Of a stretch of 64,000 nt of DNA, positions 1 to 58,691 are shown one piece after another. A program made the translations under genes and the position numbers. Origin of the DNA: Pelomyxa schiedti. Its lineage: Eukaryota; Protista; Evosea. The notes under the pieces are model-generated. The model searched no databases. It was not told where the DNA came from and saw nothing but the letters and a program-made list of their open reading frames with translations. Location: the NCBI GenBank assembly GCA_020536535.1, contig JAHLWZ010000123.1:1-64000 (forward strand). Reading direction: 5' to 3'. Position 1 is the first letter of the stretch. Each line of letters opens with the position of its first letter.

Positions 1-3000
1 AGATGCCTCTGTCGGACCATAAAGGTTGTAGAGCTCAACACTTGGGAATGTTTTGCGAAACAGATCAACAGTGTCAAACGACAAAGCCTCACCCCCACAA
101 AAAACCAGATTCAGAGAAGAGCATAATTCTGTAATATGTGCGTTTACCATCTTCAAGAAGTAATCCATCATTGTGGGGATAAAGATACAGGATGTGACAT
201 TTTCTCTATGTATCAGAAGAGCAAGAGCTTCTGGATCTCTGTGAGCTCCAGGTGGTGCCATGATCACAGATGCACCAACTGCAAGTGGCCACATGAACAT
301 AATTGTAGAAGCATCAAAGAAGAAAGGGAACTGAAGCAAAAAGCGCTCCGTTTGGAGGAGTGGAAAAGAGTCTCGGAGCCATGTAACAAGGTTACTTGTA
401 CCGCGATGTACGTTTACTACAGCTTTTGGAACACCAGTGGATCCAGAAGTGAAGATCGCATATGAAGCTTCAAGCCCAGTGGCAGGACGCCAGTTTTGAG
501 GGACACAACTCACGGGGAAACCACTCCAAAGGCCCTTGTCTGAGTCCAGGGCAATCACTTTCCACTGTGTATTGTATTCATATAACTTCATTTTAAGTGA
601 CTGTGAGGAACAAGACAGAAGAATCAAAGAAGGAGAAAGGTCACGAACTGCAGAAACCAGCCTCTCTTCAGGCCACTCTGGATCCAGCGGAACGTATGCA
701 CCACCGGCTTTGAGGATTCCATACACTCCAAGGAGTGTCTCAGGGAGTCTCTCAGCCACAATCGGGACAAGGGTGTCAACACCAACTCCCAAAGTTCTCA
801 AGTAATGTGCGAGCTGGTTGGACATCTCGTTCAGCTGTTTGTATGTCATTGCCACTTCTTCAAAGACAAGGGCAACAGCATCTGGCGTTTTCTGTGCTTG
901 TTCTTCAAACATGACTTGAACGGCTTTGTTCTCATTTTCTCCAAACCGTCCCGTGTCAGTTTCTGTGGAATTCCATTTCACCAGCTGTTTTTGGCGGTCC
1001 TCTGCTGGAATGCAATCAACATCCTTAACTTGTGTAGACTTCAACGGAAGGCTGATGATACTTGAGAGAAGTTGCTCAAAGCAGGCTGCAATTTTTTTTA
1101 CTGTTTCAAATCCAACAATTTCCTTGTTGTAGTCAAATCTTATGTGCAGACGGTTCAGTGACATGGGGAATATCACAACAGCGAGAGGGAAATTCGTTTG
1201 CTGTAAATAATAGAAGTGTTCAAGTGTTAAACTTGAAAGTGGCCCAGAGAGACTGCCAACATTACCGCTGGCTCCACCATATATCTGTTGCAATAGGTTA
1301 TCTTCGATTGGAAAATTGTCATAGACAATAATTGTATTGAACAATGGTTGGGAAGCTGTATTGGAGAGGTGTTTCTGGTTCCAGTATTGATGTGCAAGAT
1401 CAGCAAGAGGAATGAAACAGTAATGAGCTACATCGTTTATTAAGTGTTTGTGAAGTTTAAGAAGACACTCCTCAATCATTTGGTCATGGTTGATTTCTAA
1501 TACAACTGGGAGCGTAGTGGCAAACAAGCCAACACCTTGCTCAATTCCAGTCACTTCAGCAGGTCTTCCAGAACCAACAGTACCGAATACAACTTTGTTC
1601 GAGTCCTTATTGCACTTAGACAGGAGAACACCCCACACAAGCTGCAACACAACATTTGGTGTTGTTCCTGCTTTACGTGCATACTGCCCTAGTCGGTCCA
1701 CCATAGCCGCGTTAAGTTCTATGCCATGACTTTCAGTGTGAGTTTCAGCTTTTTGTACTTTCGTGGTAAGGGTTACAGATGCGCTTGCACTAGCTTCACA
1801 GAAGGGGATCGGGGTTGGCTCTGTGAAACCGTCGAGGAGCTTCAGCCAGAAGTCTTTTCCTTCTTTTTGGTCCTGTGACTGCAACCACCGCATGTACTTA
1901 GAGAGGAGATCGTTNNNNNNNNNNNNNNNNNNNNNNNNNNNNNNNNNNNNNNNNNNNNNNNNNNNNNNNNNNNNNNNNNNNNNNNNNNNNNNNNNNNNNN
2001 NNNNNNNNNNNNNNCTTCACAGAAGGGGATCGGGGTTGGCTCTGTGAAACCGTCGAGGAGCTTCAGCCAGAAGTCTTTTCCTTCTTTTTGGTCCTGTGAC
2101 TGCAACCACCGCATGTACTTAGAGAGGAGATCGTTGTCGTCTTCAGTGATTTGTTGGGCACCATGTGGCTTAGTGAGGATTCTGGCGTACTTCTCGTGAA
2201 CCTCTCGGAGGATGTTGCCGTAGCTCCAGCCATCCAATATGACGTGATGGACATTCCAGACGAACGCAGTGCGATCCGAGCCGAGGTTGACGAGGCTGCA
2301 TCGCATGAGACTTGGACGGTCAAGGTTATAGCTCTCCTGCCTTTCTTTAGTGAGGAAGTTTGTTAGCTTTGATTCCCAGGAGCCATCATTGGGAGTTGAA
2401 GAGGACAGGTCCACCTCTCTCCAGTCAAGTGTGCAGTGCTTGTGGACAACCTGCACGCACCCACCAAGGTCATTCAACCCTTCCTCAAGAAGTGCAAATG
2501 ACGTGCGTAAAGCAGTGTGGCATGATACAACCTCTTGCCATGCCTGCTTCAGAGCACTTGGGAAAAGCTTGCCAGTGTACGTCCAACACTGTTGAATGAG
2601 GTAAAGGCCTGGCTCAATCAACTCGTGAAACAGAAGTCCACCCTGCAAAGGTGTCAAGCTGAAAATGTTTTCAATATTCTCTGCTTTCCCCAACTTGTCA
2701 AGGAAGTACTGAGGGACTTTGGACAGAGGGAAATCTGATATTGTAAAGCAACCATTCCTGGGGTTAGTGCAGTGTGCAATCACCTTGGAGAGGGACTCTT
2801 TGTAACTTTGTGCCAATTTGTGGATGGAGTCCCTGTTGTAGGAGCGGTCAGAGAACCTGAAGCTAACTGACAAGCAGCCTCCAACAACAACCGCTGTCAC
2901 ATTTAGGGTGTCTTGGAAGTGGCACTCATTTTCTTTTGCTACATCAGCCTCATCACCACTCCCAAGGATGTTGTGGGAATCCTCTCCCTCAGTGTCGCCA

Positions 3001-6000
3001 AAGACACCTAGATAATTGAAGGAGAGTGCAGGGAACGAGTCCAAAGACTTTAGCTTCGAAACCAAGGAGTCTTTCTGACTGAAGTAGCGTAGGACACCAT
3101 AGCCAAGTCCCTTGTCTGGTATTGTATGAAGCTGATCCTTGACACATTTGATCAATTCCTCCACCTCGTTTGTAATAGCCGATGCTGCAGGACCGTCACT
3201 CTTCTTCACGGACAAATATACAGGGAACATTGTCGTGAACCATCCCACAGTCCTTGCCACATCAACAGCAACAACATCTTCCTGCCTTCCAAAACCTTCC
3301 AGGTGAAGGAGCAATCCAGTCACATCCCGCCAGGTTTTAACAGCTAGCATAAGAGATGCCAGAAGCAAATCGTTAATTTCTGTATGGTATGCCTGGTGTG
3401 CATTGGTTAAAATGCATGTGGTTTCACTCTTGGTGAGGGAAATGTCCTCTTGCTCGAAAATGCCCAATGTTGGGGTTCCACTCTTCTCCACTACCTTGTC
3501 CACAGGGAGGTGGCTGCCCAAGTGGGCTCTGTCGGCAACATTCATCCAGTAATCCCATTGTGTCTCCTCAATAGCAGGGAGGTACTTTGTCACCAGCATC
3601 TCACCCCACACATTGAAAGGGCTTGTCTTTGGAGGGAGATGCAGTGGTGGAACTTCACTGCCAGTTGCTGCAGGAGGTGACCGGGTGAGTTGGTTGTGCA
3701 GGCTGATTATGTCTTCCTGCAAAATGCGCCAAGAGAAGGTGTCCACAGCCAAGTGGTGAATCACAACAAAGAGCAGAGGTTGTCTGATCCCAGCACCTGT
3801 GAAAAGTTCTGCACGCATAATTGGACCGTTCTTTATATCGAGGCTTGACTGTAGTTCCGAGGTGCGTGTCATGATGACAGCTTCTTTTGATCCCTCCTGC
3901 TCCACAACAGTGTGCCCAACGAGTGCTTCCGTGCCCTCCATGCTCAGTGCCTCTGACAAGGTGCAGTATTCTTGCAAGACCTGCCCACTTGATGAGTCCA
4001 CTCGGTATCTCAGTCGCAGCGAGTCGTGGTGCCCAACAATGAACTGCATTATTCTTTCCATGTGCAATGTTGCATCCTGTGTGGGCATTTTTATGAAAAC
4101 TGACTGGTTGAAGTGGTTTGGTGAAGGCATCCGCTTTTCAAAGAACCACCTCTGTATTGGTGTGAGACTGGCNNNNNNNNNNNNNNNNNNNNNNNNNNNN
4201 NNNNNNNNNNNNNNNNNNNNNNNNNNNNNNNNNNNNNNNNNNNNNNNNNNNNNNNNNNNNNNNNNNNNNNNNTTCTTTCCATGTGCAATGTTGCATCCTG
4301 TGTGGGCATTTTTATGAAAACTGACTGGTTGAAGTGGTTTGGTGAAGGCATCCGCTTTTCAAAGAACCACCTCTGTATTGGTGTGAGACTGGCTTGTCCA
4401 TTTGTGTCTTGCCCTGGTTGCAATTCCTTTAATGCTTTACTTTGTGCTACTTGTGCCAAGGCAGCAATTGTTGGGGTGTTGAACAGATCCTGCAGCGTGA
4501 CCTGTAGGCCCTGTGCTCTCAGTTTCGCTATGAATTGTAGTGCCAAAATGGAATCACCTCCAGAGAAGAAGAAATTGGAATGGAGGCCGACCTCTGATGG
4601 GTGGGCATTGAGCAAGTTACTCCACAATGCAAGTATGATAGATTCCTCTTGAGTGAGGTTTTGCATGGCCCCATCACTCACACGGGTATGATTTTCCCCA
4701 GCAGGAGGCAAAGCCATAAGTGCCTTCCGGTCAAGCTTGCTGTTGGGTAAAAGAGGCATTGCTTCTAAGAAAGTAAAAGTTCTGGGTACCATGTATATGG
4801 GCAACTTGGTTCCTAAGTATTCACGCAGTACCGTAGAGTCTGGTTTATGGGCGACTCCTACAACCACATAAGCAGCAAGGTATTTTCTTCCAGGTCTATC
4901 CTCACGAAGGACAATGCACGCCTGTGCTACAGATAGATGGGATCTCAAAACTGCTTCTACTTCACCTGGTTCAATCCTGAAGCCATGTAGTTTTACCTGA
5001 AAGTCCGCTCTTCCCAAAAATTCTATTGCACCACCTTCCCTATATCGGCCTAGATCCCCAGTTCGGTACATATTTCCTGGTCCGTATGGGTTCTTCACAA
5101 ATCTCTCTGCTGTCATTTCTGGACGATTCAGGTAGCCTCTTCCAACACAGATACCAGTAATGCAAATCTCACCAGCACACCCAGAAGGCATGAGTTGTTG
5201 TGCCCCATCAAGTAAGTAAACCTTAACATTGCTCATTGGTGTTCCAACTGGTGACACATGCAGAATTTTGGAGAATTTTTCCAGCCCAGGCTCTGTGCAG
5301 TCCCAAATGCAAACATCATCTGATGTTTCCGTAGGACCTTTTTCCCCCCACCAAAAGAAAAATCTTATTCATATTGCAAACTTAAAGAAATTTCTCTCAT
5401 TGAAGGGTGGGGAGCATACCATAAAGATTAAACAGTTGAGCACTTGATTTAAAAAGGCTGTGAAAGGTTCTCACTGTGTCAAGCATTAATGCTTCTGCAT
5501 TACTTATAACAACACGAAGAGAGCGGCATTGTCTCGCTACATCGGGCACTAATAAAAATTGGTCCATAAGAGAAGGAACAAACTGGATGGCAGTTATCCG
5601 TTGTTGCTGAACAAAGGAAGCTAGTTTTTCAGGATCCCGTGGGGCTTCAACAGGGGCAAGAACAACACAGGCACCAACAATGAGTGGCAACATGAATTCA
5701 AGAAGGGAGGCATCAAAAAATAGAGGGGTCTGAGAACAAACGCGGTCTATGTGAGAAATCTTGAATTTGTTTCTCAGGCAAAGGATATAATTAGTGGTTC
5801 CTTCATGCATATTTATTGCTGCCTTTGGCCTTCCAGTAGAACCAGAGGTGAATATTGCGTATGATGCTGTCTTGCCTGTCACTGATACTGTGAGATTGGA
5901 CAGGCATTCTGGAGATTCATTGCCCCACACTCCTTTTCCTTCAGAGTCAAGAGAGAGTATGGTGAGTTGTGATAAAGCTGAAGCTCCAAGTGCCGCTTCG

Positions 6001-8311
6001 AGCTTCATAAGCATTAGGTGAGATGATAAAATCACAATTGAAGCTCCAATATCGCTTAGAGAGGATGCCAGCCTATCAGGTGCCGAGTCAGGATCTAGAG
6101 GGACATAGGCCCCACCTGCTTTCATAATACCATAGACGGCTATCACCATTTCAATGGATCTGTCAGAAATAACTGGCACAAATGAGTTGGGCCCTATCCC
6201 AGCTGAATGCAGAAAGTGAGCTAACTGGTTAGAAATCTGATTGAGCTCGTTATAAGTAAAGCTAATATTGTCATTGAAAATTGCTGGTGCGTTAGGGGTA
6301 CGAGCCACTTGCTCTTCAAATAGGACATGAATAGGCTTAAACTGGCCCTCTCCAAATCGTAGTGCCTCCATGTCACCAGTGTTGTTCCATTCAATAAGTT
6401 GCCTTTGTATCTCTTCCGAGCAAAGTAACGGGAGATTTCTAACGGAACGGTCAGGATAGTCAACAACTGCATTGGCAAGTGTTTCCATGTTCTTTGCCAG
6501 CATTGCGATTGTGGAGTCATTGAAAATATCCTTTGTGTATTCAAATTTCAAGCAAACATCTCCAACTTGACAACCAGTAAGAGCACTGGTGTCATCTGCA
6601 GGCCATGCTGCAAGAGTCAAATCGAATGTCGTAAATGGATTATAAGGCCCGTGATCCTGAACGACACTTTTCACACCTTTCATTGATGAGAATGCTCTGG
6701 ATGTATGGAAATCACTCCAGGAAAATAAAACTTGCACCAAAGGTTCCCTATCCATATTCCTTTCAACTTGAAGATGTTCTACTAACAGCACAAAAGGTAT
6801 TTCTTGCATTTCAAGAGCTTGATGAACTTTTTCCTTTACTTGCTGGACTGCTACAGAAAAGTCCTTGTTATCATCAGCTACCAGTTTGATTGGAAGGACA
6901 TTTTCACAAGGTCCCACCACCCCTTCCACACCACTTAAGAGGTTCCGTCGATTTCCAACAGGAACACCAACAACAACAACTCTATCTTCTCCTTCCCCCT
7001 TCACCAAACTCTTATGGGTTGCATACCGATGAAGCAGCACCTGAAACAGAGTCAAAAGGGTAACGAAGAGTGTTGTACCATTTCTCCTCCCCAGCATTTT
7101 TAATTTACCAACTACTTGCTGTTGTAGTCTCCAACAACAACAACCAGTATCATATGATCTCCCACCAATCACCATATTGCGAGGAACATCCAGTGGCAGT
7201 TCAATTACATCTGGAATGCCAATAACTTCACTTTTCCAGTAATCAAGTTGGGAATCAAAAGAGTCTCCCTCTGACCATTCTCTTTGCCATCGTGTGAAAT
7301 CCGCATATTGTAGTGGAAGTGGCTGTGAAGTAATGCTTGGAGGTCCGTTGTCCGTCAAAACACAGCTGTTGTAAAACATAACAACATCCCTCATGATCAA
7401 ATGAAAAGACCAGGGATCAGATACAATGTTGTGGATCCGCACAAGCAATGTAATGTGTTCTCCACATTTGTAGATACGCACACGCATTAAAGGGCCTTTA
7501 GAAAGATCAAAAGGCTTACGAAGTTCACCTTCAATTTTGGATTTTATCACAGTATTGCATTCCAGTGAAAATCGTGTTGAAACTTGTTCCACTACTATGA
7601 TATCTTCTGTTGCTTTGGCATTTAATTCAGTCAAAACTTGATGTGGAATGCCATTCGATCCTGCATGAAACACAGTTCTCAATGCTCCATTTTTCTCGAT
7701 GACAGATAAAAAAGCACTTCGAAGTGCAGAAATATCAATGGTTCCCTCCAGCTTCACAACCATGAAAGATGTGTACTGAACAGCACCCGGGGTGAGCTGG
7801 TCGAGAAACCACAATCGCTGTTGCGGGTAAGATAGGGGGAGGTCGGCTTGGCCTTGCAGTTGTGCCTGTTGTAGCGCTGGAGGTCTTTTCGGTGTGGGTT
7901 CTTGGAGCAACTGAAGCAAGCCACAAAAAACACTGCCGACCGTTTCGCGTCTCATCAGATATGACACCGACACACTAACCCCCAAGTCTCTGTCAAGGTA
8001 CTTTGACATGGCCATGAACATTGCCGAATTGAATCCCAACGACACCAGTGAATGCTGCCTGGCATCGCCGCTCTCCTCTGACCACCACCCTTCCTCTTCC
8101 ACGTGGTTGTCGTAGTCATCGGAGACTTGTAGGAGGCACTTCACCAAGCATGCAAAGTATTCCCAAAGAACAGTTTGGGGCAGAGCGGCGGCACCAGAAC
8201 TAACAATAGCTCGCACTTTGGCGGAGAGCTCATCAAACTGACGAGCTGTGTGCGATCTGGAAGGGGACGAAGAAAGTGACTCTCCCAATGAAAACCCCAC
8301 GTACTCGTAGC
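1..8311 (-). CDS. Multimodular non-ribosomal peptide synthetase (T-C-A-T-E-C-A..., runs off the window edge; 5' end uncertain)
   Basis: Carrier LVSLGFNS (~8025). C1 has LSYPQQRLWFLDQL and HNIVSDPWS. A1 has YAIFTSGSTGRPKA, FDAS, NLYG^PTE, GEICITG..VGRGYLNRP, YRTGDLG, GRADFQVKLHGFRIEPGEVE and NSKLDR. T2 has FFFSGGDSI. E has LTPIQRWFF, HHLAVD, EGFGRQE, RTVGWFT and FNYLG. C2 has LTPLQGGLLFH, HHVILDGWS and SGRPAEVTGIEQGVGLF. A2 (read by hand, ~920 to 1) has LKAGGAYVPLDP, YAIFTSGSTGVPKA and NLYGPTEAS. The frame is continuous once intron 5338-5419 and the gap duplications are removed. A likely acceptor (cctag) just above 8311 implies an upstream exon that I could not resolve. Confidence 0.95.
1794..2135. 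repeat. Exact 121-nt duplication flanking a 100-N scaffold gap (1794-1914 = 2015-2135)
   Basis: Identical sequence cttcacagaagggg...gagatcgtt on both sides of the gap; an assembly overlap. Confidence 0.93.
4052..4393. repeat. Exact 121-nt duplication flanking a 100-N scaffold gap (4052-4172 = 4273-4393)
   Basis: Identical sequence ttctttccatgtgc...gagactggc on both sides of the gap. Confidence 0.93.
5338..5419 (-). other. 82-nt GT-AG spliceosomal intron in the NRPS A1 domain
   Basis: Minus strand reads tat g|gtatgc...gggaaaaag|gt cct acg gaa; splicing restores the conserved NLYGPTE (A5) motif. Confidence 0.92.
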
Positions 8312-8937
8312 CTAGGAATAGAGTTCATTGGTTGTTTATAGCATTTAAAAAAAAAAAAAGACAAGTTACGAAGGGTAAAACAACCGCTTCCAAATACATT
8401 AGACCGCGTATACGTAGTTGCGTAACTAAGAAACACCAACAACAATCAAAGAAAACAACCTCCGCTCATCTCGTTTATCGTCGGGACCGCACAAGCGCTG
8501 TTTTATTTTTTATCCAGAAAGTTTTTTTCCCTTTTCCTAAGATGTGCTCACACTCATCGGCTGTTATTTTATTTTTATCGCAATTTCGGAAAAACAGCAA
8601 CACTGATTTCCATAGTACATACTTCGGAATCGGAACCGCCCCGGCACAAGTGTTTCGTGGTCTTACAAGAACCTCCTTTGGTTGCAAGAAAGAACATCAC
8701 CGATCCGCGGACCCAGAAGGAAGGTGTGCAATTGACTCTTTCCCCAGGGGCATTCAGTTAGGACACTCCCCACCCTTCTCCCATTCGGATCTCGTTTCGC
8801 AAGCTTCTTTTGTGGCGAGTGATTGGGCTGCGTTGGGCATCATCAGGAAGACCAACCTTCTTTTTTTAATTTCTTATTCCGGCGCAGTTGCACGCGTAAT
8901 AAGTCTCGCCTCGCCCTTTGCACAGCGATACCGTACA

Positions 8938-14038: not shown

Positions 14039-16279
14039 TTATCCTTTGAATACCTTGACCACGGTAGTCACAGCACTGCGGCACAAGGGGCACTGCTTAA
14101 GAGACGAAGCACAGGCGAAACAGCACGTCAAGTGTCCACAAGGAACAAACACAGCATTCCTCACATCAGCCATACAAACAGAACACTCTTCCTCAACAGA
14201 AGGCTTTGCCGCAGTTGCTTCTGGTTTTGGGGGCTCCGGAGTTGGAATTGGTGCTGGCGTCGGACTTGGAGTGGCGACTGAGTGTGTCCCTGTAAACGGC
14301 GGGGGTGGCGGGGGCGGCGCAGCAGGAATTATGGGAGTAGCCGGGATCGCCGGCGTGAGCGGCGGCGGTGTCGGGAGCGCGAGGAGGGACGACGACGGGG
14401 GGCTCGTCGGCGGCACGAGGAAGTTGACTGTGTCCAGGTAGCACAGCGTGAAGTTGCATGCCTCGCAGCACCAGCACAGCACGCCCTTGCAGTTGGACGC
14501 GGTGACCTTCCTGCGGCACCCGCCGACCTCCTGCTGCGCCGCGCACAGCCAGCTGGCCTTGGCCCCGCTCATGGTCAGCGGGTGGTCGTGCAGGTACACG
14601 TTGACCACCGGCGGCAGCGACGAGTTGGCGCTGGCCACGACGCCCACCGGCGGCGGCGCCGACCGGAACAGCGCCACGTCCAGGTCGCACAGGTCAAAGT
14701 CGCACTTCTCGCACCTCCACCTCTTGACGCCCACGTGCGACTTTGGGTGGGTGCCCACTTTGCGCCGGCACGAGCCCACCTCGTGTATGGCGTCGCAGTT
14801 CCACCCGAGCTCGTTGAAGCACTGCGCCAGGGGGTGGGGGTGTATCCACACGCTGACTACGCTGCCTCCCATAATGGGCGGGGGGAGGTAGTGCGGGGGG
14901 CAGCGGTACTGCCCGACGTCCAGGTCGCACAGGTCAAAGTCGCACTCCCTGCACTGCCACCTGCTGACGCCTCGGCAGCTCTTCCCTCCCATTCCCACAA
15001 TGCCTCTCAGGCAAGAACCCGGCTCCGAGCGAGCATCACATATCCATTCACCTTCCGTTCGCGTGGAGTAAAGCGGGTGCTGGTGGATATAGACGCGGAC
15101 CGAGGCCGTCGCCTCCGCGCCGGAACCGGCCCAAGGAGCCGGCACTCGGAAGCTGGCCGCGTCCAAGTCACACAGGTCAAAGTCACAGGCGTCGCACCTC
15201 CAGCGCTGTGTGGTTATGTAATTGGTAGTATTCACGCCCCTCCTGCATCCACCCGGCTGGCGCTCCCCGTCACACCTCCACTCCTGGCCCCTCACTCCAC
15301 ACAGAACCAGAGGGTGCAGGTGCAAGTACACCCAGACCTGCGACACACCCACCCTGAGGCCTCCCGTAACAGTGGGCCTGCTAGGGGAGGAGGCGGAGGA
15401 GGAGGAAGTGCCGACGAGAGCGGAGGATGTTATTTTTGTGGGGGTGAGAGGGAGGGCGGGGGGCTTCGTGGGGGGCGGGGCGAGGTTGTAGGCAGCAACG
15501 TCCAGGTCGCAGAGGTCGTAGTCGCAGAGCTCGCACCTCCACCGCTTGACCCCGCTGCAGGTGCTCGGGGTCACGTTTCCCCTGCAGCCGCTGACCTCCC
15601 GGGCCCCGTCGCACCGCCACAGGGTCCTCCTCGTGTGCAGAACCAGAGGGTGCCTGTGCACGCTGACCCTCACGCTAGTCACCTCGGATTCCGCGGAGGG
15701 CGGCGCGGTCGGGGAGCAGGAAGGAGAGGACGCGGCCGAGGCCGAGGCCGCGGCGGCGGCTGGGGAGCTGGGGGGCGCCCGGGGCATGGAGGCGGGGATG
15801 GGGGCGCTGGAGGGGTAGGAGTAGTAGCGGGCGACGTCGAGGTCGCACAGGTCGAAGTTGCACTGCTCGCAGCGCCAGTGGGCGACGCCCGAGCACGTCT
15901 CGTAGGTGACGGAGCGCGGGCACCCGCGGGCCAGCCGGGCCCCGTCGCAGAGCCACAGCCCGCGCCCGGCCCCGCTGTCCGTCGGCGTGCGCCACAGCGC
16001 CAGCGGGTGCGGGTGCACCGAGACGCACGCCACGCTGCCGCACGCCATCGCGTCCACGTCGCACAGGTCGAAGGGGTCCAGCGCCGCCGCGCAGTCCGCG
16101 CAAGTCCAGCGCTGCACCCCGTTCCCGGTGAAGTAGTTGGTGACCCCGCGCGTGCACCCCTGCGGCGCCCGGCACGCCCAGCCCTGCCCCCGCGGCGCCG
16201 GCCTCAGAGTGTGCACGTGCGCTGCCCCGGCTCCGGGAAACGACGGCGCGTTGAAACTCGGTGGCGATGTCGATGACAT
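14039..16279 (-). CDS. RING-finger (IAP/RING-HC type) putative E3 ligase with 7 tandem Cys/His zinc-finger repeats, 746 aa, intronless
   Basis: C-terminal CSVC..CGHLTCCFACA..CPLCR RING. Seven HxHxL..WxC..GC..WxCxxC(D/N)FDLCDLD repeats resemble DC1/ZZ-like fingers. Start taken at MSSTSPP. Confidence 0.88.
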   Translation of the reverse strand: MSSTSPPSFNAPSFPGAGAAHVHTLRPAPRGQGWACRAPQGCTRGVTNYFTGNGVQRWTCADCAAALDPFDLCDVDAMACGSVACVSVHPHPLALWRTPTDSGAGRGLWLCDGARLARGCPRSVTYETCSGVAHWRCEQCNFDLCDLDVARYYSYPSSAPIPASMPRAPPSSPAAAAASASAASSPSCSPTAPPSAESEVTSVRVSVHRHPLVLHTRRTLWRCDGAREVSGCRGNVTPSTCSGVKRWRCELCDYDLCDLDVAAYNLAPPPTKPPALPLTPTKITSSALVGTSSSSASSPSRPTVTGGLRVGVSQVWVYLHLHPLVLCGVRGQEWRCDGERQPGGCRRGVNTTNYITTQRWRCDACDFDLCDLDAASFRVPAPWAGSGAEATASVRVYIHQHPLYSTRTEGEWICDARSEPGSCLRGIVGMGGKSCRGVSRWQCRECDFDLCDLDVGQYRCPPHYLPPPIMGGSVVSVWIHPHPLAQCFNELGWNCDAIHEVGSCRRKVGTHPKSHVGVKRWRCEKCDFDLCDLDVALFRSAPPPVGVVASANSSLPPVVNVYLHDHPLTMSGAKASWLCAAQQEVGGCRRKVTASNCKGVLCWCCEACNFTLCYLDTVNFLVPPTSPPSSSLLALPTPPPLTPAIPATPIIPAAPPPPPPPFTGTHSVATPSPTPAPIPTPEPPKPEATAAKPSVEEECSVCMADVRNAVFVPCGHLTCCFACASSLKQCPLCRSAVTTVVKVFKG

Positions 16280-16572
16280 TTCGAAACGAAAACTTTTTTT
16301 TTTTTTTTTGGTTTTTAAAGGTTTTTTCTGTTGGGTGCTTGTTCTCAAAAAAATCACAAGTGTAAGGAAAAAGGGTGCCATCAAAGATGGCTAAGTGCAG
16401 GAACAAGGAATCAAGAATAGCCCAATCTGAAATGCTGGGTTCTTCTAAATCAACTTTGTTGGGAAGTAAGTTCCGAGCTAAGGTGGATCGCTGCGATTCG
16501 TTTTCTTAGTCTCATTTCAGCCGTTTGTGTTCGTTTTGTTTGGAGCTGTATTCATTAGAATTGACATAGCAC

Positions 16573-21000: not shown

Positions 21001-21390
21001 GCCTCCACTGCCCCCTGTAGGCGGCGGCGTCGCGGTCCTGGCGCTCGCGCACGTGGTGTTGGGACTCTTGGCCGCCGCACTACCCGTGGCGCCGCAGGGG
21101 GCCGCCGCCGCGGCGGTGGCTGGGGGCGTGCTCCGGGGAGCCTGGGGCTGGCGCACAGGCTGGCCGGGCGCCCGAGTGTCCGGGGCTGCCGTCGAGCCCG
21201 ACGCCGGGGCCGACGCCGGGGCCGACGCCGGGGCCCCGGTGCTGGCGGTAGCCGGGACGAGCGGGAGAGGCAGAGGGGAGAGAACCCCTTGAGGAGTGCT
21301 CGTGTCGCTGTTGTTGGGTGTGGGAGGTTGCTGCATGGAATCGTCGGCAGCGGTGCACCCAGTTCGTCGTCGTTTAGGTGGCGGGTTCAT
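18037..21390 (-). CDS. Nuclear coiled-coil protein, possibly ICE1-like (little elongation complex subunit 1), multi-exon
   Basis: N-terminal NLS PPPKRRR, then CASCANL followed by a coiled coil, a disordered middle, and a C-terminal helical domain containing spliced ALSRVLTKILCSQGNPYLEHARILVYNI. Confidence 0.5.
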
Positions 21391-21609
21391 TGTTGTATCT
21401 GGAAGAATTTCCCTCCTCAGTCTGGCTGAGAGGAACGCCGACCAAATATCCAGAGCTTATGTGTGGTGAGGCAGTTCCTCCAGTCGCGGGTCCAATCTCC
21501 AAATCAGCTGATTCCCTGAAAGAAAAACGTAAGGTTTTTTCTTCTTTTGTAGATTCGGAGAAGTCATTGAGTAGCTTTGATTGTTGGTTGTGCTACGTAG
21601 CCCCCGCGA

Positions 21610-22245
21610 ATGTCCAAGGCAACGAGCAAGTCCGGGTACCAGGCAGTACCCAAGACAAACCCCACCCCCAAAACATCCGCGAGTGCCACAACCAAGTCCA
21701 CGTCAGCGACAACCAAGTCGACGACGACTGCGGCCTCCAAGTCGGCCACGACCAAGGCGGCTGCTTCTACGACGACGACGGCGGCGGCCAAGGGCACGCC
21801 CACGGCGGCGTCGGCGACATCCAAGACGGCGAAGCCCGCCGCGAGCACGACGACGACGGCGGCGGCCCCGGCGCCGGCAAAGGGCAAGGCGAAGATGGCG
21901 TCGGCGTCCAAGTTCTCGCTGGGGAGGAAGAAGCAGCAGGAGAAGAAGGAGGAGCCGCCGGCGAAGGAAAACAAGGCGCAGAAGATTCTGGAGGAGGTGG
22001 AGGAGACCAAGGCGGTCATGGCGGACAACATCAACATAATGCTTGCCAACCAGGAGAAGCTGGAGGACCTGGAGGATTCCACTGGCAAGATGGCCCAGAA
22101 TGCTCTGCAGTTCAAAAAGAACGCGACGGAAATCAAGAAGGAAATGAGGTGCAAAAACTGGAAACTCACCTGCATTATTGTGTCTCTCGTAGTTGGTGGA
22201 ATCCTGGTCTGTGCTTGCCTGGTCATTATCCCATTTGTTATGTGA
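21610..22245 (+). CDS. Synaptobrevin/VAMP-type SNARE with a Thr/Ala/Lys-rich N-terminal extension
   Basis: EVEETKAVMADNINIMLANQEKLEDLED...ALQFKKNA..KKEMRCKNWKL followed by a C-terminal transmembrane helix. Confidence 0.9.
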   Translation: MSKATSKSGYQAVPKTNPTPKTSASATTKSTSATTKSTTTAASKSATTKAAASTTTTAAAKGTPTAASATSKTAKPAASTTTTAAAPAPAKGKAKMASASKFSLGRKKQQEKKEEPPAKENKAQKILEEVEETKAVMADNINIMLANQEKLEDLEDSTGKMAQNALQFKKNATEIKKEMRCKNWKLTCIIVSLVVGGILVCACLVIIPFVM

Positions 22246-22420
22246 AAAAAAATAAAATTAGTTTTGTTGGTTCGTCTGGCACCCTCCTTCTTTTTGCTTT
22301 CCCAACACCGTCGACTTGGCATTATTCCCCCGAATCAGTGTCATCAGTTGCAGAGAGATCCAGATCTGGAAAAGGAAAAACAAAAAAACTTGGTGCTGTG
22401 GCCCGGGTTGCTGACGTACA

Positions 22421-23319
22421 ATGGACCGAGCCGAATACGAAGATGTTGCGGAAGAGGAGGGAGACCTAGAGGAAGATCTTGCAGCGGCTATTAAAAGAGG
22501 GCCACCAGTTCACGTAGATCCGTCTAGAGCGGGTGCCGGCTCGTCGATTCCTCCACCTCCAGATCCTGTGTGTTTGTGCTTCACTTACTTTAATAAAATG
22601 AAGCTTATTGGCTTGTATTTTTCTCGCCTTACTTACTTTTCGCCCAGGCGTTTGAAGAACTAAAGCAAGGTTTGCAAACTATGGAAGCTGAGGTTCAACA
22701 ACTCGCGGTGATACAAAGGCAACAGGAGCAACAGATGCAAGGCGGGGCTGCTACCCATGCTAACAAGGCCGAAGTCGATGCCAAGTCTGTCTTTGTTGCA
22801 AATGTATGTTTTCTCCTCACCTGGCCAATGTACTTCGTTTCCTTAATGTATTCTCAGGTTGACTGGTCTGCCACTCCAGAGGAAATCCAAGCACACTTCC
22901 TTCAATGTGGCAAAGTGAGCCGCGTCACTATTATGTATGATCAGTTCACCAGCCGACCAAAAGGATTTGCGTATGTGGAATTTCTTGAAAAAGAGAGTGT
23001 AGCAAATGCCCTGGCCCTCACTGGCTCTGAGTTCAAGGGACGACAATTGAAAGTAGGCCCCGTCTTTTCATACACAACATTTTGATAAGGCACTAGGTCA
23101 TACTCAAACGCACCAATATCCCTGGCTTTAAGTCACGCAGGAGGAGGCGTTTTGCATCTCCATATGATTTCCCACCTGCTGCCTGTAAGTTTTTTTTTTT
23201 TGTAACAGTTCCTTTCGCTAAGCTTTTCCACAGACTTCCCCTGGATGCCAGCGCCAATGCCCATGGCCCGCCCAAGGTTCCGCGCTCGGAGGAATGCTAG
23301 CTATCACCCCTACTCTTAG
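22421..23319 (+). CDS. PABPN1: Nuclear poly(A)-binding protein 2, multi-exon
   Basis: Acidic N-terminus and coiled coil, RRM EVDAKSVFVAN|VDWSATPEEIQAHFLQCGKVSRVTI..PKGFAYVEF, KRTNIPG, C-terminal YHPYS*. Confidence 0.9.
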
Positions 23320-23651
23320 TGGACACTGTTATGTTGCAAAGTTACTAGGTAGACCTCCACTTTTTGGTGGTGTCGAAAGACATAGGGTCAAATTAAACAA
23401 AACAAAAAACAACCTACCCAACTCAATGCACGCAAGTCCATTTTAAAACCACAAATTGAACAATGATCCATAAAAAAACAAAAGAAACCTGACAAACCAA
23501 AAGAAACAACAAAAAAAAGAAAATGGAAGAAACCATTAAAATAAAGTAAGAAAACAAAGAAGAAAAAAGGTTTCCTTTCTACTACCCACACAATTCTTTA
23601 TTTCGTTGCTTTTCACTTTGGTTTTTCTTGTCCTCCTTCGAGTTCTGAAGT

Positions 23652-24524
23652 TCAATAAGCGGTGTTTGGTTCTGTGCAGTTCTTTGCAAAGTGACCAGGC
23701 TTCCCACACCTGCAGCACCTTTTCTCTCCCTGTTGGCGCGCCTTCTTGGAAGGAGAGGGACAGTTGGCTGCAAAGTGGCCTTTCTTCCCACAAGAGAAGC
23801 ATACGCTCTGGGCTGGGCTGGGGCACGCGCTCATGACGTGGTCGTAGGCCCCGCAGGCGTGGCACATCTTCAGCTTTAGTTGCGCGGGGGCACGCTGTAG
23901 CGGAAGAGGGCGCCTGCCATATCTCGGTAGGGGCCGAAAACTGGGCTGGCGGGGTGGGCGGGCGTAGCCTCGCGGGAAGTTCCGCGGTTGGGGCGGGACC
24001 CTGAAGGGGACCGGGTGTCGCCTCGGGGGCTGCTGGGGCCTGAAGGGGGCCGGGCGGGTCCTCGGGGGCCTCCTGTCGGTCCGCGCTTCGATCCGCTGCC
24101 TTGGGGCCCGCTGTGCTGGATCGGCTGGGCATGGGCACGCCTCCCAGTCTTCTACCGGCGCGGCCGCTGGTGCCTCCGCCGCCTCGGGCTCCGCGTGCTC
24201 CTTCTCGGGCGCCCTCCTTCTAGCCCACGCGGTTTCCTCCCGCTTGGTTCGGACGGCCCCCCACGCGTCGTCCTGCTCTTCCTCCTCCTCCTTCGTCGCC
24301 TCCTGCTGCTGCTCTGGCTCCTCCGCCTCCAGCGCCTCCGCCTTCACCTTAGGCTTCTTCTCCTTCTTCTTGCCCTTGTTGTTGGTCGTCGCCGTGCTTC
24401 CGCGCTTCTCTGGCGGCGGAGGCGCCTCCATGGCCACGAGTTCGATTGCGTGTATTTCCTCGCACTCCTTGGGCGGCTCTTCCGCCTTCTGTTTTGCCGC
24501 TGCTCCCTTGCGTTTCCTGGGCAT
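23652..24524 (-). CDS. CCHC zinc-knuckle (x3) nucleic-acid-binding protein
   Basis: CHACGAYDHVMSAC, CFSCGKKGHFAANC, CCRCGKPGHFAKNC; charged Lys/Glu N-terminus and Pro/Arg-rich linker. Confidence 0.85.
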   Translation of the reverse strand: MPRKRKGAAAKQKAEEPPKECEEIHAIELVAMEAPPPPEKRGSTATTNNKGKKKEKKPKVKAEALEAEEPEQQQEATKEEEEEQDDAWGAVRTKREETAWARRRAPEKEHAEPEAAEAPAAAPVEDWEACPCPADPAQRAPRQRIEARTDRRPPRTRPAPFRPQQPPRRHPVPFRVPPQPRNFPRGYARPPRQPSFRPLPRYGRRPLPLQRAPAQLKLKMCHACGAYDHVMSACPSPAQSVCFSCGKKGHFAANCPSPSKKARQQGEKRCCRCGKPGHFAKNCTEPNTAY

Positions 24525-24651
24525 GGTTGTGGTGTTGTCGAACGTATGAATTTTTCTGGTGATTCTGGATTGTGAAAAACAGTTCGCGTTTTAACGGTGA
24601 GTTTTGTAAAGGATATCATCTATTTCTACAACAACAAAAGCCGTTGGTGGT

Positions 24652-27600
24652 TTACAATACGGAATGGGATGATGACGTGTTCGCGGTTGTGGGTGGTGGA
24701 GGGGCCCGGTGGAAAAGAGCGCGTAGTGACTCACCTCGTGCTTTTTTGGGTGGCACAGCCAGGCCTGGAGATGATGCAGTGTTGTTGTTGTTGTTGCTTG
24801 CAGTGGGTACCTTGGGGCGTTTTCGGAACAATGAATCTTCAGTGTTCTCCACAAAGAGCATGTTGCCAGATACTACGTGGACTCGTGCCTGCAATCCTGG
24901 TAACACATCCAGGTTTCCTAAGCTGGGATCCTTTTCAGACTTGTGCCGGTTACTGTGTGGTCAAGTTAGACTAATACCACTTGTAGATGATACCGTAGTA
25001 GGAATAGTTTGTGTTTCTGGGCAAAGCAGTCGTCCCGAGAGCACGTGGGAAGCTTGGTTACTTGATGTAAGCATGCGTCGCGATCAAACGAAACCTCGGA
25101 AACTGGCACAAACAGCGGCTGTGAGGTCAAGTCAACTAGACGAATCACGAGCTCCAGAGGGGCGTTGTTTCCCTGCTTCTCAGTAAATTGCAATTCACAT
25201 ACAATGTACTCAAACCCATGTGAAACAGAAACTGAAACAAGGATCGCTTCCAAGCAGATCAGCACAGCTGACATAGTATAGGGGTCCATGTTGAAGTGCA
25301 CCAGCTTGTTGATTAGCAGAAAATAGAGAGAGAAGTTTACAGCAGGTATCATTGGCAAGCAGTGAACGCAACTTTTGGGTGATGAGACAGAAATTGAGAA
25401 AGGAGAAACAAACAGTAGTAATTAGCCGTGTAACCAAATTCGGTAAAGTAAACAACAAGTGACAAGATGGACCAAAATACGATCGGCAATCATCTTCGAA
25501 AATAGATGGATCCAGACTCCTTTCTCGGATGCTGAAAATTGACTCGATACAGTAGTCGTATTTTTCAGCAGGAGTGATGTTGTGCCGTGGAAGATGGTAA
25601 TGTGAAGGTGTGAGCAAACACGAACTGGGTGCCTGGTATTGATTGGAGGAGAGATTGAGGGCCAGTGCCAGGCGGTCATACAGGATCTTGTTCAAATTAG
25701 AAGATTACAAGGGAGTCTCCCTTAACACTCACCTGGTACAAACGGAAAAACAGATAGAAAGACGTATTGCCATAAAAAAATTGTGGTGAGCTACATGGCA
25801 AATCGAGATTTTCAGGATTAACCCCAATAAGGGGAGATAAAAATTTACTCATAAAGAGGCTCATCTTTATTGAAGTAAGATGACGGAAAGGAAGGAGGCA
25901 CACCTTTTCTCGTTCTACTTCTTCAATTGACTGTTCTGGAACTGAGAGTATCAATTTGGCGATGTCGGTATGGATTGAGGTCAGTGGCATGGTATATTTG
26001 AGAAAGCCAATATTGTTTGGTTGGACATTGCCAGTGGTTGAAGGGGGTTTGCCCACTTTGTCAGACGTGGCAGAGGTTTCTCCATTGAGGATTTCTGACA
26101 ATAGAAACTTGGGACTTATGGCCTTGCGTTCGGCAACTTTAAACGAGTTTGTGGACTGACTTAGTGACTTTGTTTGAATTTTGTTGCCAACTGTCCGCAG
26201 GTATTTGCTATATTCCGACTTGGCTCGATACCACTCCTGATCTTTTTGTTTGAGTCGTGAAAGTACTACAGGCACTGCAATGTGAGGGTCCGATGTCAGA
26301 AATTGCATAATGGCTCCCCCATGTTCGCCATAGAGACGTAAAATCGCTTTTTTCCCAAGACCTGCGAAGTAAATAAAAGTTTGATAGAGCTAAATGTAGA
26401 AATACCACTTATGGCATCTGGGTCAAGCTTGTGAGAGGCGGCAGCTTCAGTTGAGAGTTCTGACAGCTTTCTACTTATGTCCATAAGAACTTTAATAGCA
26501 CTTTGGGTCTGTGCAACATTGAGATCATGCTCTAACCTGGGATACCATTAGAGGGAACTTGAGCCATGGAAGTTACAGTTCATCTTCAATTCTTGACACT
26601 GACTCTCCAGGGTGTTTGTGCTGGTTGTGCCTGGCGACTTCTTCACTCCCTTTAGGTTGTGATCTCCATTTATCATTAAGGACGGACTCATCAAGTGCTG
26701 TCCTACCAGAACACTTTGCCTAATAAGGTTAAACTAAATTCTTCAAAAATTGTTGCTACCGAAGAGGGGCTTGCCAAGTAGCTGGGACCAGATCGCGGAC
26801 TGTCTGATCCCCAGCGCACAGTAGTTTGGGGTGGATGAAGTTCTTTACTATGTGATTTTCTTTCCTCGGGTGATTGCAATCCAACACCTACCAGAATTAA
26901 TTACGAAAATGAGGAATGCGGACTACCGTTTGAAGGTCCGTGGGAAACAGCTGGAGATGGAGAAGGGGATGGGGCTGCAGTAAGATGAGGCGAGGAGACA
27001 GGTGATGGCGCCACTGTTGGATGCGACGCGTGTTGGTGGACAGAGTGTGATGTCTGATGTGCATGATGTGCATTCTGCTGTTGTGAGGCGGGTGGGAGAG
27101 GTTGTGGCGTCAGCTGTGGTGATGCTTGTGTAATTGGTAAAGACGCTTGTGGATTGTGAGAGGGGTGAATCGTTACAGGTGGATGCAACATCGTTTGTTG
27201 TTGTTGCATCATGAGCATATGCTGGTGATGGTGTGGCAACGCATGTTGGTTGGGTACGGTCTGTTGTGCTCCTTGTTGTGCTGGTTGATGCGGGTGTTGT
27301 CGGTGTTGCGCCGGGAGTGGAGGTGATGGTGGGACAGAATTCATTCCTGGTGCATTTACTCCTATGGCTGGACTATGCGGTATTCCAGATGGTTGTTGTT
27401 CGTTGTAATCAATGAACTGTTTAAAGGAATCAAGTAATGCCGGGTTCGAAGCAAGTATATCCTTGGTAAGAGACACAAGTTCCCCTTTTGTCAAAACTTC
27501 TTGCGCAAATAGACTTAGGCATTTCAAAAATTCGTTGTACAGCAGTGGAGGCAATGCCTCCTTAATCCTGGAAAGAACAGCTGAATCCTCAACAGGTGCC

Positions 27601-30600
27601 ATTGCATCCATTGCACCTTCTTTGAGTAATCAGTGATATGCTTGACTTTACTACAAACCAGTACCAGGCGCCATCTCTGAGATATCTTCTTTCGATTCGA
27701 AAGGCCTCCTAGAATCATCCCTCTTCGCTGGTCGTTTAGGTCTGCGTCCAGACTTGCTCTTGTTATTCGACTTGGAAACAGAAGAAAGGCAAAGTTACCT
27801 GAGCTTTCTCTTCATGGGATCGCTTTTGCTTTCGTGCTCTTGGGGGAATTTTACGTTGAGGGGCACTGACAAGCTGTTCTGGTTGCACTTGCTAGGATAT
27901 TTCATGTGAAAAGCAAAGACGACGGAGGAGGAAACCTCAGGCAAGAACATAGAAAAGTCATCTAGCAAGTCTTGATGCTCATGAAATAGGGAGGCAACTT
28001 GTTCATACACATCCTTTATAGTGAGATGCTCTTCATGATATTTATGCAAAATTTGAAGAAACTCCTTATAAATGTTTGGTTGCCCTGCAAAACGGTTCTT
28101 GTTTTTTATCAGTAAGAAACTTGACAAAATGGATGCCACACTTTGATTTTTTTAACGTAGTTCCTTGCTTCATTAATTTCTGGGGCCTTCCGTTGTTGGA
28201 TTTCTGTGTCTTCAATTCGAAACCCCGACGGTAAAAATGTGTTGAATATGCTCACAAGACTTGGATGCCCTTGAAAAAGTTCCTTAACTTTGGTGATTAC
28301 ACCTGGGGTGTCAATGCTGTTTTGTGGGAAAAAAGGGTGTCATGAGGAAATAGTCCCAGAAGAGTCAATATACTTTTGGTTTTTGAATTCTTTCATAACA
28401 TCCAAGAACTGATTGTACACCACAGGATTATCAGAAAACTGTTGTTTGACTTGGTCTAAAAAGTCTAAGGCACTTTCATATCGCATATTGCCCACCCGAA
28501 CTGTGCAGGGTTACTTTGACTGCAATAAAAAGCTTTTACCTCCACAACTTGGAGCAGGTTGACTGCCTAACAGTGGACTTCCCTGCATCACTCCCGAAGT
28601 AGGAGTACTTGGTCCCATGTGGGGGGACACTGCGGAATGAACACCAGAAAGGGGAGGTAGTGTGGGAGTACCCATTGCTAAAGTATTTGCGCTGCTCATT
28701 GCAAGGTCAGGACCAGAAGATGGCAAGCAGTTAAGAAGCTGACGGGGAGGGTATTGTTGTAAAGAGGAACTTGGAGTGGGCAAGGCTTGCATGGAAGGAA
28801 CTGGCTTCAATCAAACTATTAGTCACGTGTCTAAAAAGTTAAAATAAACCTGGGAAACTGCAACGGCTCCAAGAGCTGGTGAGTGTTGTGGAGTTGACAA
28901 TAGTGTTGATGCGGGAATTAGATGCGGTGAGTTCAACAAAGCGGCATTATTCAGCTGGGTGAGACTTGGTATGTGTTGGTACGAGTCATGGTTGAGTAAG
29001 GTGGTTGAAGAGGAATCAGAGATAGTAGTTAACACCCTGGGCACTGTAGTCTGGACAGGGAGTGGGGGGTTAATGATGGGTGGGATGTTTTGTGAAGTGG
29101 ATTTTGAGACTGGAGCAGGCGTCGGAGTTAATGCTGTAGCAGGAAGAAGTGACAAAGGTTCTTGCTCATCTTCAGAATTGCCATCAGAATCCTTCATCTC
29201 ATTTGACTGATCCAGAGATGCAATCTGAGCCGCTTGCGGCGCAGGGGTAGTGCTGTGGTTTTGCACGGATTTTAGATCAGATGTAATTGCACCATTTGAT
29301 TGCAGGTCGTTATTGTTTGACCACGTGTTATTTAAAAGGGTTGGAGATATCTGGGGAGGAAACCCAGAGGGTAATTGGGGTATCATCATTGGCGTAGTAC
29401 TTGTTGGTATGGGTGTGGGAGGGGTGTTTTGACTGACGACTTGGACAATATGTGAGATGTGGTTTGAAGGCGAATGAGCATGTGTACCAAGTGCTGAATT
29501 TATGGATGGAAGCTGTGGTGGAACGGGGGGTGAGGGTGTTATCTGTGGAGTGGGCATTTGAGCTGGGCTCAACAGTGATGTCATTTGTGTGGCTGTTGAA
29601 ACAACTGAAGGTGTTGTTGAGGAAGGAAGAGTGTTCGAAGGGACAGTAAGTTTGGGACTGGGCACTGTAAGAGAGTGTGCTGCATGTGCGGAAAGAGGAG
29701 AAGGTGGTGAGTGTATTTGTGGAGGTGTCGATTTGCTTAACGGAGTTGTTGACAAAGATATAGCTGGAACATCCACACAGTGTAACAAAGGTTCTATGTT
29801 TTCTGAAGGCAATGGCCTGGAAATCTGGGTGGTATCATGTTCGGTTTCTATTGGTAGAGTACTATGTACTTGTGTGGTGGGTGACTTCACTTCAGGCTCC
29901 AGAGGTAAGGGTGTAGTGGTTGTTGTTGTGGCAATGACAGTGGCAGGAAGTAGAGAAATTGGCAATGGAGTAGTTAGTGATACATCTTCCATGCCAGTGG
30001 GAATGGTATCCAAGTTCATATCAACAGTTTGGGGAAGAGGCTCAACAAAATTGTTTGCAGCCCCAGGCTCTGTGTTAGTAGTATGCAGGGAAGCCAGCAG
30101 TATTTCCCCGTCCTCTTCAGGCGGTGATCGTTGTGAACCAGAGGATGTGAGTGTTGACAGAGCATTGCCCCCTAAAACAGGAAGGTTTGGGGTCACCACA
30201 GGAGCTACTGATGAGGGGTTCAGATCAAGGGACTTTTCAGCAGAAGACGGTGGAATATTGATGGGAAGATCAAATGACTTGGCTTCTTGCCCCATCACAG
30301 AGTTGAGATCAAAAGAAGAATAAGGTACAGTAGCCTGCTGTTCCATTCTACGTGGTGATGGTGTATTCAGTGTGACATTATTGTCGGTTGTGTTGGTTGG
30401 TGCATTTGTAGGAAGTAGATCAAGTGGCGATGTGGAGATAGGTTTGCTCAAATCTTGGTTCTGCTCAGAAAGAGGTAATGGAGTCTGGTTTAATTGAATG
30501 TCATCTCGCTGCCCTGCAAGTGGACTTAGTATCGAGTGTTGTGGTATAGAATTGCTTGATTGATGGAGTTTGGGTGATGGGTGCTGTAAAAAAAGAGAAG

Positions 30601-30841
30601 ATGATGTAGGATAAGTTAGTTGCTCTATTTGTCGAGGGGGGGAAGCACTGTGGGACTGAAAGAGAGGCGCTGCCGGAAATGATGTGGGTGGTGGGGAATT
30701 CTGTGTAACAGGTTGATTTACAAACTGTGGCTGCTGATTAACTGGTACCTGTTGTGGAAATTGTGTGTATTGGGGGATCCTTTGCCCCGAGGTTGTATGG
30801 GGGCTGTCTGCAGTTCTCACAAAAGAGGCGTTACTGTCCAT
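24652..30841 (-). CDS. SIN3: Sin3 transcriptional corepressor, multi-exon (5' end may extend further)
   Basis: PAH1 [34 protein letters not shown]2 [24 protein letters not shown]3 [18 protein letters not shown]-like [54 protein letters not shown]-terminal [13 protein letters not shown]. Confidence 0.92.
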
Positions 30842-38900: not shown

Positions 38901-39499
38901 GGTCACTAGAGAATCTGTCAACAGCCATCCTGTGCACAAGGCCGGCAACAGAATCCGAACCGTTACTACAGCTACGACAACAAGACACCAGCAGTACCAA
39001 GAAAAACGAGTCATTTCCCGGAGATTCCCCGGCCGAGCAAACAGTCGACCTCGAAACGTGCATTGCATTGCTTACCGCACCGGAAGAACTTGGGGAAGAC
39101 AACCCATGGATGTGTCCCGAGTGCCGCACAGCAAAACAGGCCACAAAGACACTCGCGGTGTGGAAGGCACCCAGGATTCTGATCGTTCACCTCAAAAGGT
39201 TCACCAACTGGGCATCCAAGGTGAACGTGCCTGTGCGGTTCCCAGCAAGCAGTGGAAGCACATTCAGGATCAAAGTGGGCCACTCTGGGGAGTACGCGAA
39301 GTACCGGCTCTTTGCGGTGTCCAACCACATCGGCTCATCATTGGAATTTGGCCACTACACCGCGTGTGCCAGGAACCCGGATAGCAACATGTGGTATGCC
39401 TTTGATGATACCTCTGTGAGTCCGCTGCCAGAGGATTGGAACGAATCGGTGAGTGCGGCCAGGAATGCATATGTGCTCTTCTTCGAGATACAAGATTAA
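35983..39499 (+). CDS. Ubiquitin carboxyl-terminal hydrolase (USP/C19, DUSP-containing, USP4/11/15-like), multi-exon
   Basis: DUSP RYIVSDRWMSKW..GRIDNSDI and AWEFLHARYGGGPEI; Cys box GLVNMGNSCYVSSAIQCL; QQDVHEFL; His box VSNHIG..GHYTA..WYAFDD; AYVLF. Confidence 0.93.
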
Positions 39500-49438: not shown

Positions 49439-49550
49439 GGTCGATCGGCTGGCAAAGAGGGAAAAAAAAAAGAAAAAAGTTCGTCGGCGAAGAGATGAAA
49501 TTTTATCGAGAAACGAAAAAAAAAATCAAAGAAGGCGGAGGTGCCGCGGT

Positions 49551-58392: not shown

Positions 58393-58691
58393 TGCCCTTT
58401 TGTGGCTTACGCGAATTGTGGGGTTGTGAGGAAGTAAAAAGACGAAAATAATCAACAGAACGGAACGCCTAAATTTTCTCAGGAAGGGGCTGGTGTTTTT
58501 TTTAGAGCCCGCTCACAGGTTTCGAGTTAGACAAGGAATTCCGGGAGGCGATTTAATATGGCGTGCAGGATTCGGAATTATTCAGCACACTGAGCAGGCA
58601 ACACAACACCCAAAAAACCACCAAATGAACATGTTTTTTCTTGACAGTCTCCAAAATGATGAATCTATGGCACAAAATCAACTCCTTTTTT

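Follow-up and report, generated by a model that had tools for sequence, protein, structure and literature searches.

The first 64,000 nucleotides (nt) of contig JAHLWZ010000123.1 (C123 below; positions 1 to 64,000 of the forward strand, assembly GCA_020536535.1) of the anaerobic amoeba Pelomyxa schiedti, which we call the window, begin with a bacterial-type gene for a non-ribosomal peptide synthetase (NRPS) and continue with eukaryotic genes. This raises the question of whether the synthetase belongs to the amoeba and how much of its assembly line the contig holds. An earlier note on this DNA had read the line as seven domains: carrier (T), condensation (C), adenylation (A), T, epimerization (E), C and A. 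These are not the whole line, as the gene runs past the window to end in T, E and a stop codon on a second contig, C318, and probably has three modules. The likely arrangement is a single protein of about 5,000 amino acids (aa), T0-C1*-A1-T1-E-C(DCL)-A2-T2-E-C(DCL)-A3-T3-E*-stop, derived from one ancient bacterial NRPS; asterisks mark altered domains. It probably has an E domain in every module and no thioesterase (TE).

Domain order and the path of the gene onto a second contig

Domains were called piece by piece with Pfam, PDB matches and, for E, TIGR01720, and domains of bacterial proteins in the trees were labelled by context. Gene pieces were searched singly, and whole-gene length and phase are sums over the pieces. 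In this piecewise manner the order T-C-A-T-E-C-A on the minus strand was borne out, with Pfam reporting a weak T, C and A, then A-sub and T, then two C-family domains, and then C and A. At least two C-A-T modules are in frame, and the carrier Ser is present as GGDS in T1 and T3. The internal E domain falls in the E clade and is closest to those of TycA and GrsA; it has the His of HHxxxD and the Glu of EGxGRE, and the equivalents of His743 and Glu882 are both kept in the PDB match. The C domain that follows is of the DCL type, as had been proposed: its PDB matches are McyB, PvdL, BacC and SrfA-C, it falls in the after-E clade of the tree, and it has HHxxxDG. The GGDSI motif taken earlier as a signature of a carrier before E is present in T1, but it does not mark E, since Pelomyxa carriers that lack a following E also have it; on C424, C1508, C150 and C259 it precedes LCL domains. 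The features of the gene, and the gene that faces it, are as follows.

8460..8469, minus strand: predicted first mini-exon, Met-Ser-Gly plus 1 base; matches MSGGYEY of KAH3766625.1; predicted without RNA cover
8312..8459, minus strand: predicted intron 1, 148 nt, GT..AG, phase 1; alternative donors possible
8061..8311, minus strand: N-terminal ~85 aa with two long predicted helices (single-sequence AlphaFold, pLDDT 70-80), a possible docking element
7900..8060, minus strand: T0, divergent carrier resembling the acyl carrier protein (ACP) of a polyketide synthase (PKS), LGFNS, Ser codon 8027-8025 (Pfam PP-binding)
6405..7850, minus strand: C1, condensation domain of the LCL clade whose active site is altered to HNIVSDP (7433-7413) (PDB, tree)
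5420..6320, minus strand: A1 core, the exon preceding the intron; pocket D A L Q I N L; NAE for GGE
5338..5419, minus strand: sequence-predicted intron, 82 nt, GT..AG, phase 1, within the Gly codon of YGPTE
4736..5337, minus strand: A1 C-terminal part and A-sub, catalytic Lys in NSKLDRK (Pfam)
4451..4636, minus strand: T1 carrier, GGDSI (Pfam)
4173..4272, no strand: false gap with identical 121-bp flanks; a graph branch, and also the entry of the unassembled 422-bp linker X
2730..4172, minus strand: E domain, HHLAVD and LEGFGRQE, within the collapsed 2158-bp repeat U2 (TycA/GrsA E, E 1e-65)
2015..2672, minus strand: N-lobe of the DCL condensation domain, HHVILDG, within the repeat (PDB and after-E clade)
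1915..2014, no strand: false gap with 121-bp overlap; branches to two C-lobe/A blocks (the C123 window block and C318:1-1866)
985..1914, minus strand: DCL C-lobe, variant of this module; blocks 30-60% identical to the C318 variant
1..909, minus strand: A2 core, pocket D A I I F G L, truncated at the contig end
8938..13990, plus strand: eukaryotic gene of several exons facing the NRPS head to head, plausibly MYBBP1A/Pol5; end position approximate

The gene contains two runs of N whose flanks are exact copies of one another (1794-1914 equals 2015-2135 around gap 1915-2014, and 4052-4172 equals 4273-4393 around gap 4173-4272). The genome was assembled with SPAdes from P. schiedti single-cell DNA with a largest k-mer of 121 (PMC8887013), the length of both overlaps. 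Because the flanks are equal over 121 base pairs (bp) at both gaps, the gaps are assembly artefacts with nothing missing along that path, which rules out real missing sequence. Each gap-free block has exactly one stop-free minus-strand frame, and this frame is kept across both overlaps. A single-cell RNA contig (X4) bridges 4051 and 4273 and extends to 4438, which places 45 bases of it in unique sequence; this read evidence covers gap 4173-4272, and gap 1915-2014 was closed by overlap and frame only.

Window positions 1-121 are identical to C318:1967-2087, and the gene continues there. C318:1-121 is identical to window 2015-2135, and C318 thus carries the block between these shared nodes in a second version, followed by A-sub, T-E and a stop at 4675. 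The two versions form a mosaic in which stretches identical at synonymous sites alternate with stretches that are 30-60% identical (C-lobe, A pocket), as would be expected of tandem modules under gene conversion. The E-C block U2 assembled as its own 2158-bp contig in two DNA runs at depths of 68 and 131, where the unique flank (U1) had 26.5 and 38, ratios of 2.6 and 3.5. In both runs a 422-bp contig that is missing from the assembly, linker X, joins U2 at 4393 in frame (HGWDREVERF/ASLTP). Allowing for 30-base overlaps it has 362 internal bases, a length with the phase required between the end of the A-sub repeat and E; homologous T-bearing spacers are of similar length (336-338 bases). The branch sequences are on no other scaffold of the assembly. 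The E-C block is a collapsed repeat, and the simplest reading of these joins is that one gene connects C123 to C318; the pieces then sum to 15,024 coding bases, which is divisible by three and corresponds to ~5,000 aa.

Several points weigh against this three-module line, some of them in the sections below. The 5' end of linker X is unseen, and the loop is therefore deduced; the assembly is compatible with either order of the two middle modules; and the depth ratios fall between those expected of three and four modules, although depth from amplified cells is a poor measure of copy number. Repetition of the loop, giving the same architecture with four or more modules, is unlikely: it would suit a depth of linker X that is 1.6 times that of U1 in both runs as well as the U2/U1 ratios, but there are only two variants of the middle block, the U2/X ratio of the deeper run is 2.1, and amplification bias could produce such values. 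It is also improbable that the gene has only two modules (T-C-A-T-E-C-A-T-E), the middle blocks being alleles or parts of separate paralogous genes that share the E-C block. The assembly does contain a simple bubble between two shared 121-mers, and the short path is also in frame, with the start of linker X unread. However, alleles leave the second entry into U2 and its depth above the unique flank unexplained, and the blocks diverge by as much as 60-70% in stretches, against a difference of 4 bases over 5 kb for the other haplotype seen. For separate genes, further unassembled pieces would be needed. We therefore retain the three-module line, which makes this locus an example of NRPS modules concealed by short-read assembly.

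Intron, host linkage and origin

The intron at 5338-5419 noticed earlier is confirmed by sequence, in that its removal restores the frame and YGPTE, but no RNA contig crosses it. Without removal, the A1 frame meets a stop at 5397, and among 30 frame-keeping GT/GC-AG pairs this one is the sole pair that yields an intact NLY-G-PTE. Because the site is empty in the other Pelomyxa A domains examined, the intron appears to have been gained in this copy. RNA contigs map to the gene, and among the points to be set against our reading are the thin RNA cover, the unseen splicing and the possibility of DNA in the RNA library. GenBank already has the 5' piece of the gene as KAH3766625.1 ('non-ribosomal peptide synthetase, partial [Pelomyxa schiedti]'), a 905-aa protein that stops at this intron. 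Its model excises two in-frame stretches of C1, 44 and 18 aa long (window 6870-7200), both of which align to solved C domains; these two annotated introns are probably false.

The gene is linked to host sequence at both ends. No gap separates it from the plus-strand neighbour in the assembly, nor in two DNA runs as far as 8980, and an intron-rich Rab gene adjoins the T-E-stop end on C318. The DNA was from amplified single cells, and the same join was checked in both runs, which come from one sample. The neighbour is a multi-exon eukaryotic gene, as described before, but its MYBBP1A-like identity rests on a sub-threshold PF04931 match (model positions 1-26, one exon, E 0.1), and a search with this profile across the genome gave no match above the cut-off. 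GC content at third codon positions (GC3) of the NRPS gene is 0.39-0.56, inside the host range; the E-bearing blocks (2016-4172; L038:2783-4672) have 0.54-0.56 and the remaining gene 0.39-0.42.

Profile searches of the genome matched 36 C domains, 66 carriers and 39 ketosynthases, as well as several thioesterase-like sequences; the only two E domains in the assembly are on C123 and C318. We built trees with FastTree, using the best bacterial-type matches as references and no fungal or other eukaryotic ones. In these C-, E- and A-domain phylogenies, which the earlier note had proposed, the Pelomyxa domains sampled form one clade per type among bacterial ones: all 12 A domains group together among their best bacterial-type matches (SH 99 and 98), and the C-family tree has Pelomyxa clades of 13 LCL (95), 2 E (99) and 2 DCL (99) domains. 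The best non-self identities are 30-44%, to proteins of cyanobacteria, myxobacteria, Acidobacteria, Bacillota and unnamed metagenomes. Orthologues of known product in related protists, which would have spoken against a new pathway, did not appear; word-indexed and HMMER protein searches found no close eukaryotic orthologue, but were length-limited or biased to long proteins and leave absence from other protists unproven.

This pattern fits one old bacterial acquisition followed by expansion, with the present gene as the family member that would have kept the fullest bacterial grammar. A domesticated, horizontally acquired NRPS was thus correctly surmised insofar as the gene is nuclear, of bacterial type and host-linked, but it belongs to an expanded NRPS/PKS family and is not a lone acquisition. 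To be set against this origin is the restricted reference set of the trees. It is hardly credible that symbiont or contaminant DNA was fused to host sequence by amplification or assembly, even though the protein is of bacterial type and the amplified single-cell DNA came from a host with bacterial endosymbionts. An intact A1 needs a spliceosomal-type intron, eukaryotic genes lie at both ends, the join recurs in the two runs from one sample, the domains cluster with those of other Pelomyxa NRPSs, which occupy many host scaffolds, and the nearest bacterial proteins are no closer than the identities above.

On C753 (5265-21614) a reducing PKS (KS-AT-DH-MT-ER-KR-ACP) lies upstream of a two-module NRPS, T-C-A-T-C-A-T, in which both A domains have the same core sequence, a further case of module homogenisation. 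C1181 (3-1500 of the fetched piece) has a DCL-clade C domain, sister to C2, directly after T with no E between them, probably because E was lost and DCL kept. Identically scoring A domains occur at both ends of C151 (57-1154 and 93661-94758), and two near-identical NRPS pieces lie on opposite strands of C1326 (2443-5806); these are likely further collapsed or inverted NRPS repeats.

Altered ends, proposed product and surroundings

The first carrier is weak (Pfam PP-binding E 4.4e-4, 20.9 bits against a cut-off of 20.8), and its best matches in the ESM Atlas were all PP-binding or ACP domains at 0.88-0.89, which we treat as a lead only. T0 looks more like a PKS ACP than an ordinary NRPS carrier. 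A low-confidence single-sequence AlphaFold model of the N-terminal 160 aa matched no known fold. We rejected the N-terminus as a remnant of a sister-gene starter acyltransferase, as it has no similarity to the inter-domain regions of C753 or C151. C1 is nearest to the LCL domains of DhbF, Txo and TycC in the PDB and falls in the LCL clade; the RzmA and CDA starter domains score far lower, and no loader is linked to the gene. Its HNIVSDP (HNxxxDP) lacks the second His and the Gly of HHxxxDG, a further point against the proposed line. All 384 bacterial LCL domains fetched have the second His, which among the 15 Pelomyxa LCL/DCL domains examined is missing from C1 alone. Because C1 is HNxxxDP and the first carrier is ACP-like, initiation appears to be non-canonical.

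A1 has NAE for GGE, in which Asn is outside the eight commonest residues at that position in 669 bacterial A domains; this too counts against the line as drawn. The partial pocket codes DALQINL, DAIIFGL and DATHFGL matched known-type bacterial codes at 5 of 7 positions at best and permit no substrate call. The A1 code is nearest to DILQ(I/L)GL, a Gly-type code. The first residue had been predicted to enter in the D configuration; E and the following DCL domain are intact, but the prediction requires that A1 select a chiral residue, and since its code is nearest to Gly-type ones a D residue from module 1 is uncertain.

The terminal E domain on C318 falls in the E clade and keeps the catalytic His. 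At the column of TycA E882, the catalytic Glu, it has Asp, which again speaks against the proposed line (Glu in 436 and Asp in none of 441 bacterial E domains); Trp also replaces the motif Gly. The domain ends just short of the T-x-SDF/COM tail borne by most terminal bacterial E domains. The search for a terminal TE or R domain that had been suggested found none: no release domain (TE, R or terminal C) is present on the last module, the gene ending in E and a stop, and the lack of any linked loader or release enzyme is a last point on the debit side. On C753 and C1181 the sister genes likewise lack a TE, their last domain being a bare T.

We think it very unlikely that the altered C1, T0, A1 and terminal E mark an NRPS in decay, although four motifs are non-canonical and RNA cover is low. 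The ~13 kb of assembled coding sequence has no stop or frameshift, the internal E and DCL domains are intact, and C1 scores 366 bits, in line with its canonical paralogs (350-427). Several C domains are functional without the second His (PMC10510592), and rotifer NRP/PKS genes are also barely expressed before induction (PMC11258130). The altered first C and last E are natural variants informative on functional change in C-family domains.

The suggested genome search for an Sfp-type phosphopantetheinyl transferase (PPTase) gave two Sfp/AASDHPPT-like ACPS matches on C561; the two near-identical copies (21307-25231) are 3.6 kb apart, one adjoining a gap. A host enzyme of this type would prime the carriers. 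With their differing pockets, the three A domains would load three residues, and E would invert residues 1 and 2, which the DCL domains would accept, to give a D-rich tripeptide. The product is probably a short peptide rich in D amino acids. For initiation, we give about even chances to a trans partner supplying the ACP-like T0 with an acyl or polyketide unit that caps residue 1 via the altered C1. T0-C1* could instead be an inert scaffold, with A1-T1-E1 starting the chain as GrsA does, which is somewhat less likely. Slightly in favour of N-capping are the position of a carrier ahead of C1, the helical stretch that leads into it, and the sharing of a single identical E by modules 1 and 2. Release by a trans-acting thioesterase or partner would be a roughly balanced bet, made likelier because the sister genes also lack a TE; release by the altered terminal E* is possible but rather doubtful. 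As for its role, a protease-resistant peptide might act on bacteria or archaea taken as food, competing with the host or living in it. The fully specified scenario is a long shot: an acylated, all- or mostly-D tripeptide, with a His-less C taking acyl from a docked ACP and a Glu-less terminal E releasing the chain, that manages endosymbionts or prey.

No tailoring or transport genes were seen by eye in the window, in agreement with the earlier note, and the neighbourhood is an ordinary eukaryotic one. Genes recognised by eye are VAMP-like (21610-22245), Sin3-like (25200-30841), a ubiquitin protease (36973-39499), CDC123-like (47904-49438), an SWR1/SRCAP-like helicase (49407-55706) and SPATA20/YyaL-like (61059-63528). 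At 14039-16384 (minus) an intronless protein has approximately seven Cys/His-rich 'HxHPL...CD..C..CDFDLC' repeats and a C-terminal RING. Intronless open reading frames at 39704-41191 (plus) and 57214-58455 (minus) have a common N-terminal (S/T)HPRCGA motif and apparently form a lineage-specific family. In the intergenic stretch 8697-8785, run X1 has four bases unlike those of the assembly, and X2 has no such difference.

Comparison with known systems

The Pelomyxa gene has the T-E-DCL grammar in common with bacterial E-containing NRPSs (TycA/TycB, GrsA, BacC, PvdL, McyA/B), at 30-44% identity. It differs from them in its predicted spliceosomal intron, a probable E in every module and the lack of TE or R, and in its ACP-like T0, His-less C1 and terminal E without the T-x-SDF/COM tail. 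ACV synthetase of fungi, bacteria, Folsomia and Plectus likewise has three modules, an E domain and a D-containing tripeptide product (PMC10531068), but one E and a TE, whereas the Pelomyxa gene has no TE, a T0-C start and, probably, an E per module.

Bacterial NRPSs expanded in a eukaryote are already known from bdelloid rotifers, and an NRPS with an epimerase is reported from the protist Bigelowiella. The NRP/PKS family of bdelloid rotifers is likewise derived from bacteria, expanded as a clade, expressed at a low baseline and poorly resolved by short reads (PMC11258130, PMC10531068). The likeness is one of description, and the Pelomyxa host differs in being an anaerobic amoeba with endosymbionts. 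The NRPS of Bigelowiella natans is described as having three domains, an epimerase among its features and an unknown product (PMC7073580); it belongs to an unrelated lineage and, by description, is set apart from the Pelomyxa gene by the several E domains and altered ends of the latter. In the literature searched we found no paper linking Pelomyxa to an NRPS, and Archamoebae are not known there as makers of non-ribosomal peptides. An E per module, changes to the first C and last E, and a host that is an anaerobic amoeba with symbionts are all undescribed in that literature. A bacterial NRPS taken up long ago would have gained introns and expanded in a host obligately partnered with bacteria and an archaeon, and the gene is a concrete candidate, open to testing, for a chemical means of controlling symbionts or prey.

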